A stretch of 63,862 nt of DNA, counting the filler, from Olpidium bornovanus S191 (lineage: Eukaryota > Fungi > Olpidiomycota), in the NCBI GenBank assembly GCA_017911155.1. It is 26 parts of 26 records of this genome, joined end to end, with 100 filler letters (N's around TTAATTAATTAA, not from the genome) between each part and the next. Parts side by side here need not be neighbours in the genome. Positions count along the whole stretch, not along the records: positions 10,232 to 11,646 come from JAEFCI010002490.1; 25 more parts are not named here. The stretch is one strand, 5' to 3'. Each line of letters begins with the position of its first letter. The first letter of the stretch is position 1. The translations under genes were made by a program, and so were the position numbers. The notes beneath the pieces are model-generated. The model was not told the origin of the DNA, did no database searches, and was given only the letters and a program-made list of their open reading frames with translations. This document shows, piece by piece, positions 10,232 through 10,661 of the stretch.

Positions 10232-10661
10232 CCAGGGACGTCAACCCCGAGCAGAGAGCCCGGTGGTAGGCACGGCCGCCAGCGCCTCCCGCAGCGTCGT
10301 TACGCCGAGCAAGAAGATGGCCGACCTCAACATAAGTCGCCGCCTCCATGCCTGCTTCCCCGCCGTCGCACTTATTGACCAATACGCGGTGCTCGCTGCT
10401 GGCTATAAGCTCCCTCCCGTCTTCCAGCGTGAACTTCCAGCAAGGTCTCCTGCCAGCTTTCCAAGCCCGGGAGACGACATCGCCGGGCCGAAGCACCTGC
10501 GCGCGGTCATACTCTTTCGCAGCTTTCGCGCGACCGCGAAGCTTCTTGGTCCACAAGGGAGGTAACGCTCCCCAGGACACGATGCGGTCTCCCGCAACGA
10601 CGTCCTCGATCCACTTGGTGCTCCCGTCGGCCATCGTGATGCGACTTCTCTCAGCGATGCA
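10232..10661 (-). mobile_element. Intein, N-terminal splicing (Hint) region, truncated by the contig end
   Basis: Immediately after MEY: block A CIAERSRITMADGSTKWIEDVVAGDRIVS, then GRRPCWKFTLEDG, block B RELIASSEHRVLV (S88-x-x-H91) and ATYVEVGHLL. 143 codons are open and replace the kinase C-lobe sequence expected here. Confidence 0.88.

Follow-up and report, generated by a model that had tools for sequence, protein, structure and literature searches.

A class 1 intein is, judging from the sequence, quite likely to interrupt the kinase domain of an Ssk2/Wis4-type MAPKKK of Olpidium bornovanus, where it would sit in frame between Tyr and Cys of the hinge (..FMEY/C..GGSL). It is likely that the element is genuine and complete and that it splices, and the insert-bearing gene is probably transcribed. 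Most likely it is a genuine intein, ordinary as an element but new in its host and its insertion site. If it is an intein, it would have no precedent in a eukaryotic protein kinase, or in Olpidiomycota, in the searchable literature. Olpidium, a zoosporic fungus that lives as an obligate endoparasite in roots, forms a phylum of its own, Olpidiomycota; it cannot be cultured and acts as a vector of plant viruses.

A kinase domain interrupted at the hinge

The window, i.e., the whole stretch of 63,862 nucleotides that was analyzed (filler included), comprises at positions 10232-11646 the entire 1,415-bp contig JAEFCI010002490.1 of assembly GCA_017911155.1 (O. bornovanus S191). On the minus strand, the frame window:10233-11645:- runs through 471 codons with zero stops, while translation of the remaining two minus-strand frames gives 10 and 11 stops. 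Codons 1-328 encode the host and codons 329-471 (window 10233-10661) the insert, with the Cys1 codon at 10659-10661; the order along the frame is ...HHPNIVSYYGIEVHRDKVYIFMEY, then CIAERSRITMADGSTKWIEDVVAGDRIVS...RRPCWKFTLEDGRELIASSEHRVLV...AATYVEVGHLLAR. The translation thus bears out the reading in an earlier note on this DNA, in which a kinase proceeds through KVYIFMEY and then continues for 143 in-frame Hint codons. The same note had located the C-terminal half of the insert in an assembly gap, which proved incorrect: there is no gap, the piece is a whole contig, the Ns are padding and the C-terminal half lies past the contig end.

The host part consists of two regions. Codons 1-248 (10902..11645, minus strand) encode an Ssk2/Wis4/MEKK4-type regulatory region, which contains ...DCDPTDRKTFRWAV...LLISHFDI... 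upstream of the kinase domain. Codons 249-328 (10662..10901, minus strand) encode the N-lobe of the kinase, which extends from its glycine loop (IGGGSFGSV) past the VAVK-type Lys to subdomain V and ends in ...KVYIFMEY. Pfam Pkinase matches residues 249-331 (E 2.4e-16) at profile positions 2-82 of 263. In pairwise alignments, codons 1-328 are 46-52% identical over ~320 amino acids to fungal Ssk2/Wis4 MAPKKKs, across both the regulatory region and the N-lobe. The names of these orthologues include 'MAP kinase kinase kinase wis4', SSK2 and 'Suppressor of Sensor Kinase (SLN1)', in agreement with the host assignment made earlier. The regulatory region together with the N-lobe of a STE-group kinase places the host in the Ssk2/Wis4/MEKK4 family of MAPKKKs. 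Ssk2/Wis4-type kinases are the osmotic and oxidative-stress MAPKKKs of fungi. Identity of the host is 51% to a Glomeromycota protein (P0098) and ~50% to Basidiomycota proteins, and such near-equal values fit a deep-branching fungus.

Homology to the host ends at ...HRDKVYIF(M/E)EYC in every pairwise alignment. At this point the orthologues read EYC-x-GGSL (EYC-QGGSL), which confirms the expectation that in the Ssk2 family a Cys directly follows MEY. More than 350 Ssk2-type matches retrieved in homologue searches lack the insert, which makes it an in-frame insertion into a conserved host. Solved structures of STE-group kinases align up to the hinge as well, with MEF-C in MAP4K3 (5j5t), MEY-M in MAP3K2 (9p6a) and MEY-C in MST1 (8a5j). 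In the FMEY end we see the gatekeeper Met followed by hinge residues one and two (Glu-Tyr), and we take the next residue to be the third of the hinge, the backbone of which binds adenine.

Between the regulatory region and the kinase domain lies a non-conserved, low-complexity linker rich in Pro, Ser, Ala and Thr (window 11046-11285, minus strand, codons ~121-200). This linker carries most of the non-synonymous differences of the host relative to a variant from soil (see below), and also the sole indel that separates the two, an in-frame CGT after 11162.

The insert and its relatives

The insert comprises the N-terminal 143 residues of the putative intein (codons 329-471; 10233..10661, minus strand), covering the N-terminal splicing half of a Hint domain and the start of a central region, and its frame stays open up to the contig end. 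Block A (intein residues 1-29; 10575..10661, minus strand) reads C1-IAERSRITMADGSTKWIEDVVAGDRIVS, and its Cys1 would be expected to act as the nucleophile of the N-S acyl shift. Across 12 aligned Hint N-terminal halves, no change occurs at C1, D20 and G24, and A11 and G13 come close to being invariant. Block B (intein residues 74-95; 10377..10442, minus strand) reads C-WKFTLEDGRELIAS-S-E-H-RVLV. Its S88-x-x-H91 occupies the position of T-x-x-H, the block B Thr being replaced by Ser (S-S-E-H); the sequence of the gp41-1 intein crystal structure matches block B and also has Ser there (SEEH). An alignment of the four closest family members retains C1, A11, G13, I18, D20, G24, C74, T78, L79, D81, G82, R83, L85, H91 and L94 as invariant residues. 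Between the two blocks, a lineage-specific basic loop of ~25 residues (LWTKKLRGRAKAAKEYDRAQVLRPG; intein residues ~36-60; 10482..10556, minus strand) corresponds to a gap in every other row of both family alignments. Two of the three non-synonymous differences between the insert and its soil variant (T366I and D380G) sit in this loop. The last stretch (10233..10343, minus strand) consists of a post-block-B strand and helix, AATYVEVGHLLAR, and the beginning of the central region, which reads ...HRALCSGLTSL and is cut at the contig end.

The earlier identification of the insert as a Hint/intein domain with Cys1, block A and block B was upheld both by profile matches and by homology to complete inteins. 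With the 143 residues as query, the Hint-profile search that the note had proposed gave matches to TIGR01445 (intein_Nterm), over the full 83-position profile (E 4.3e-5, 24.4 bits versus a cut-off of 24.5), to the intein-containing radical SAM model (E 6.6e-8) and to Pfam Intein_splicing (E 8.6e-4, under the gathering score). Pfam Hint_2, Hint and Hom_end_hint match weakly, and every curated profile match of the insert sits at or below the family cut-off. These profiles, together with the alignments to complete inteins, identify the N-terminal splicing region of a class 1 intein, with Cys1 and S-x-x-H. An AlphaFold2 model of the half-domain has a pLDDT of 66, with confident blocks A and B and a loop below 50. 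Although the inteins gp41-1, Npu DnaE, Prp8 and PI-SceI top the Foldseek list, their E-values exceed 0.2, and the structural search was therefore counted as uninformative. With a GC3 of 0.71, similar to the 0.78 of the host, the intein is no recent arrival of foreign composition.

A phmmer search of the insert against 1.84 billion cluster representatives gave 19 matches at E<=1e-3, one of which is the protein of the piece itself (P0001). Pfam was run on 13 of the 18 others, and 12 of these carry Hint or intein domains; the exception, P0126, is an unrelated FctA/SpaA-type repeat protein. Four matches were judged by eye (P0128, P0131, P0134 and P0135): three show Hint motifs, and P0128 resembles a chance repeat match. 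Many of the Hint matches are tandem Hint arrays, in which scores are summed over repeated block A matches. Three matches (P0136, P0137 and P0138) are single inteins in eukaryotic hosts, all complete and canonical and ranging from 175 to 372 amino acids.

The best single-stretch match is the intein of P0136, a kinesin-3 with motor and PH domains (L002:3001-7035; JGI metagenome 3300056825, 135-kb contig Ga0558119_01110). BLASTP against the 143 residues gives 36% identity over 94 amino acids (E 9e-16), and the block A stretch of this intein reads 'CIAEGTPVLLADGTSRAIEDVVA'. It measures 364 amino acids (residues 171-534), lies in the motor domain (..SLSALGL to CINKLS..HVPYRDSKLT) and ends in VAVHN, followed by C. 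P0138 is a Cbl-like E3 ligase with EF-hand, SH2 and RING domains (L003:94-1977; Logan contig from SRR26425195). Its intein, 372 amino acids long (residues 116-487), interrupts the SH2 domain and ends in VAHN, again before C; BLASTP gives 31% identity over 142 amino acids (E 9e-15). The alignment with P0138 runs through the post-block-B helix into the central domain (~250 amino acids) of the Cbl intein, of which it covers the first residues; here 10233..10343 pairs with 'AAHYVEAAQLTAR...HRVVCAAL'. A further protein, P0257 from a JGI metagenome, is 74% identical to P0138. P0137 is an eIF5B fragment (L004:375-1235; GCA_025491075.1, contig JAOQFB010026138.1) annotated with Intein_splicing and GTP_EFTU. 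It holds a mini-intein of 175 amino acids (residues 30-204) located just before the DTPGHE motif (GLL to CIDTPGHE), with 'CVKVTLEDGRELIATADHEVL' as block B, which closely resembles that of the Olpidium insert, and VVHN before C at its end. The central domains of P0136 and P0138 have no Pfam family at E<=1, and no homing endonuclease is hence recognized there.

Several searches were aimed at the C-terminal half. A homologue search with residues 300-471 found the window's own protein alone, and an alignment-based search with a widened length window found only intein-free Agaricomycete Ssk2s. A profile of the C-terminal halves of related inteins returned only P0257 and P0137, without an Olpidium C-terminal half. 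Scanning metagenomes with exact peptides of the N-terminal half gave no match, and scanning them with the family block B pattern gave only two RPB2-like loci. As the relatives measure 364 and 372 amino acids, we infer that the intein would continue for ~220-230 residues past the contig end; a longer contig from the public run X1 (described below) should by this reckoning reach ~130 residues into the C-extein.

The JGI metagenome Ga0114966 contains two intron-free RPB2-like open reading frames of 2,048 and 2,063 amino acids (L005:1564-7710 and L006:1588-7779). Reading their translations by eye, each appears to hold two inteins, the second of which lies in the GEMERD/C motif, has KPCVKLTLEDGRTF as block B and ends in IVAHN before C.

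Evidence across the junction and alternative explanations

Contigs from public runs cross the junction at 10661. In run X1, a 2,674-nt contig spans the entire piece without differences (contig positions 1066-2480) and reaches 1,065 nt beyond 10232 on the downstream side of the gene and another 194 nt on the upstream side. That X1, given its near-identity, would be the source of the S191 DNA seems unlikely by date (2025 versus 2021 for the assembly). Another study contributed run X4, in which an 888-nt contig over 10232-10935 bridges 10661 and continues 184 nt past 10232. A 1,467-nt contig of soil metagenome X8, 97% identical over 10232-11056, also bridges 10661 and adds 642 nt past 10232. The contigs of X1, X4 and X8 display no joints, loose ends or unlike tails on the piece. 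The chimeric join at 10661 that had been envisaged as a possible flaw was thus not found, nor were spliced joints in the bridging contigs. According to an index search, the region 10232-10800 (intein plus junction) is complete in X1-X4 and present for 96% in X5, representing two studies. Colinear contigs without joints cross the junction in putative RNA runs from two studies, the library types of the X runs being guesses ('RNA?', 'DNA?') that are not on record. Raw RNA run X24 has zero reads on the piece, which means only that the organism is not evident in that sample.

The piece occurs in near-identical form in public runs labeled with at least seven different organisms, as well as in root and soil metagenomes, and small parts of 10232-10800 were seen in root metatranscriptomes and in runs labeled with several other organisms. 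Many plant root data sets, it seems, contain Olpidium as a passenger that has escaped notice. The intein could serve as a lineage marker for this fungus, which turns up unrecognized in plant root RNA data.

Relative to the soil variant, the intein part has six synonymous and three non-synonymous differences (pN/pS 0.16; one-sided binomial P 0.009), and the host part 19 synonymous and eight non-synonymous ones (pN/pS 0.12). The insert is thus under purifying selection close to that of the host. Together with the open frame and the specific homology, this substitution pattern argues strongly against an intron.

The main rival to a splicing intein is an insert that descends from an intein but has lost splicing, as a decayed or domesticated Hint remnant or in a pseudogene copy. 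The protein from this copy would then be dead or put to a different use, while another, intein-free Ssk2 copy may do the work. We consider this unlikely, even though several observations would suit it. The protein searches and metagenome scans did not recover a C-terminal half, the profile scores stay below curated cut-offs, the block B Thr is changed to Ser and the 25-residue basic loop is absent from the relatives. Moreover, these relatives have no recognizable endonuclease, as expected of old, immobile inteins. Nonetheless, a remnant is hard to reconcile with an open frame and with purifying selection as strong as that of the host. Cys1 and the block B His are kept, and the active gp41-1 intein has Ser at the very position in question. 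The sequence is also present in contigs of probable RNA runs from several studies, and it is hard to see what purpose a kinase split at its hinge would serve without splicing.

A second alternative accepts a real intein and questions its owner, which could be another root or soil fungus that was co-isolated with the Olpidium zoospores. The S191 assembly derives from non-axenic zoospores that had been rinsed from cucumber roots, the contigs were binned by composition and similarity, and the authors stress the mixed origins of the material (PMC7865070). Since the assembly is non-axenic and was sorted by binning, the contig may belong to another root fungus rather than to Olpidium, and the occurrence of the sequence in soil and root metagenomes and under several organism labels would agree with a different owner. 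However, the contig passed a conservative binning on composition and similarity (PMC7865070), the host part is ~50% identical to Glomeromycota and Basidiomycota alike, as expected for a deep-branching lineage, and an occurrence in roots and soil is what an obligate root parasite would show. A wrong owner therefore strikes us as improbable.

It is very improbable that the element is a naturally split intein, in which the N-lobe and N-intein would form one product and the C-intein and C-lobe another, encoded elsewhere and joined by trans-splicing. In its favor, nothing beyond the N-terminal half is seen, and the genome contig ends within the element. Against it, no stop follows the 143 intein residues, the last 30 of these match contiguous relatives where their central domain begins, and in three other data sets the contigs go on colinearly for another 184-1,065 nt.

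An artefact, whether a chimeric assembly join or an unspliced intron taken as coding, is equally hard to believe: the contig is short, it comes from a binned non-axenic assembly and raw RNA run X24 has no reads on it, but the junction is common to four independent assemblies without joints or loose ends, 143 open codons stand against ~3 stops expected from the other frames, the homology to Hint domains and inteins is specific, synonymous changes are in excess, and the element, with at least 143 codons and with contigs that go on for 184-1,065 nt past 10232, far exceeds the usual length of fungal introns. Intron read-through was accordingly rejected on the open frame, the specific Hint homology and the excess of synonymous changes, and a chimeric join because X1, X4 and X8 bridge 10661 without joints.

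Proposed splicing route and comparison with known inteins

If the element is a contiguous, splicing intein, the sequence past the contig end would continue with a central domain without recognizable endonuclease motifs, followed by blocks F and G; after the intein, Cys+1 and the kinase C-lobe would follow. As the hinge joins both lobes and forms the adenine pocket, the precursor, with its hinge split, would be unable to bind ATP properly and should be inactive. Splicing would start with an N-S acyl shift at Cys1, proceed by transesterification to Cys+1, which would be the conserved hinge Cys, and by cyclization of the Asn, and end with an S-N shift that would restore the ...MEY-C-xGGSL hinge and an active kinase. 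Barring an intein-free paralogue, the organism would need splicing to have a working Ssk2 pathway, and the gene would offer a natural case of kinase activity that necessarily depends on protein splicing. A more speculative option, to which we attach little probability, is that the intein has been retained as a conditional switch: splicing, and hence kinase activation, could be gated by the redox state or by metal ions. In that event, a post-translational stress sensor would reside inside the osmotic and oxidative stress pathway itself, with Cys1 and Cys+1 flanking the ATP-binding hinge.

Catalogued hosts of fungal nuclear inteins amount to a handful, none of them signaling proteins: Prp8, VMA1, RNA polymerase subunits, ThrRS, GLT1, CHS and eIF5B (2018 catalogue; PMC5784728). 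Neither the text nor the supplements of this eukaryotic intein catalogue contain the word 'kinase', and Olpidiomycota are not listed in it (PMC5784728). The main text of a 2023 study of Anaeramoeba describes many novel intein hosts, including cytoskeletal proteins, with insertions always in conserved regions; 'kinase' is absent from that main text, which does not prove its absence from the study as a whole (PMC10710043). The earlier statement that signaling kinases are not among the classic fungal intein hosts thus agrees with the 2018 catalogue and its supplements (PMC5784728) and, as far as the main text goes, with the Anaeramoeba paper (PMC10710043). Literature searches yielded no record on Olpidium and inteins, no relevant record on inteins and Ssk2, and no kinase-hosted intein. 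An intein at this site would extend to the protein-kinase fold the rule that inteins home to nucleotide-binding sites. Taken together with the kinesin and Cbl inteins, it suggests that the eukaryotic hosts of inteins are more varied than the catalogues show.

Like the known nuclear inteins of fungi, the Olpidium element is a Hint domain that lies in frame in a nuclear gene, at a functional site of high conservation, and has both Cys1 and the His of block B; the block B stretch TLEDGRELIA is common to it and the eIF5B mini-intein of P0137. It differs in its host, a signaling protein kinase, in its site, the ATP-binding hinge, and in its lineage, Olpidiomycota. The Anaeramoeba inteins likewise reside in novel eukaryotic nuclear hosts, but those are from a metamonad and not from a fungus. 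The closest likeness is to the kinesin-3 and Cbl inteins, which have the same wording of blocks A and B, the same post-block-B helix and cytoskeletal or signaling hosts in place of the usual ones from replication and RNA processing. Those inteins are complete and lie in a P-loop motor and an SH2 domain, whereas that of Olpidium breaks off where the contig ends, contains an additional basic loop and resides in a kinase. A further possibility, again of low probability, is that the three belong to a single family that has spread among eukaryotic signaling and motor proteins. Giant viruses could be the carriers of such a family, which is conceivable because the RPB2-like open reading frames from metagenomes have a similar block B.

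Finally, the Hint modules of Hedgehog/Hog proteins and the bacterial intein-like (BIL) domains have the Hint fold and an N-terminal Cys nucleophile in common with the Olpidium element. A Hedgehog-type or BIL module was rejected as its identity, given that the kinase fold is interrupted at the hinge and that the two halves of the host protein lie on either side of the intein in the nearest relatives. Hedgehog and BIL modules are C-terminal or free-standing autoprocessing units that cleave rather than ligate, whereas the Olpidium module breaks up a domain that only religation could make useful, and its nearest relatives are ligating inteins.
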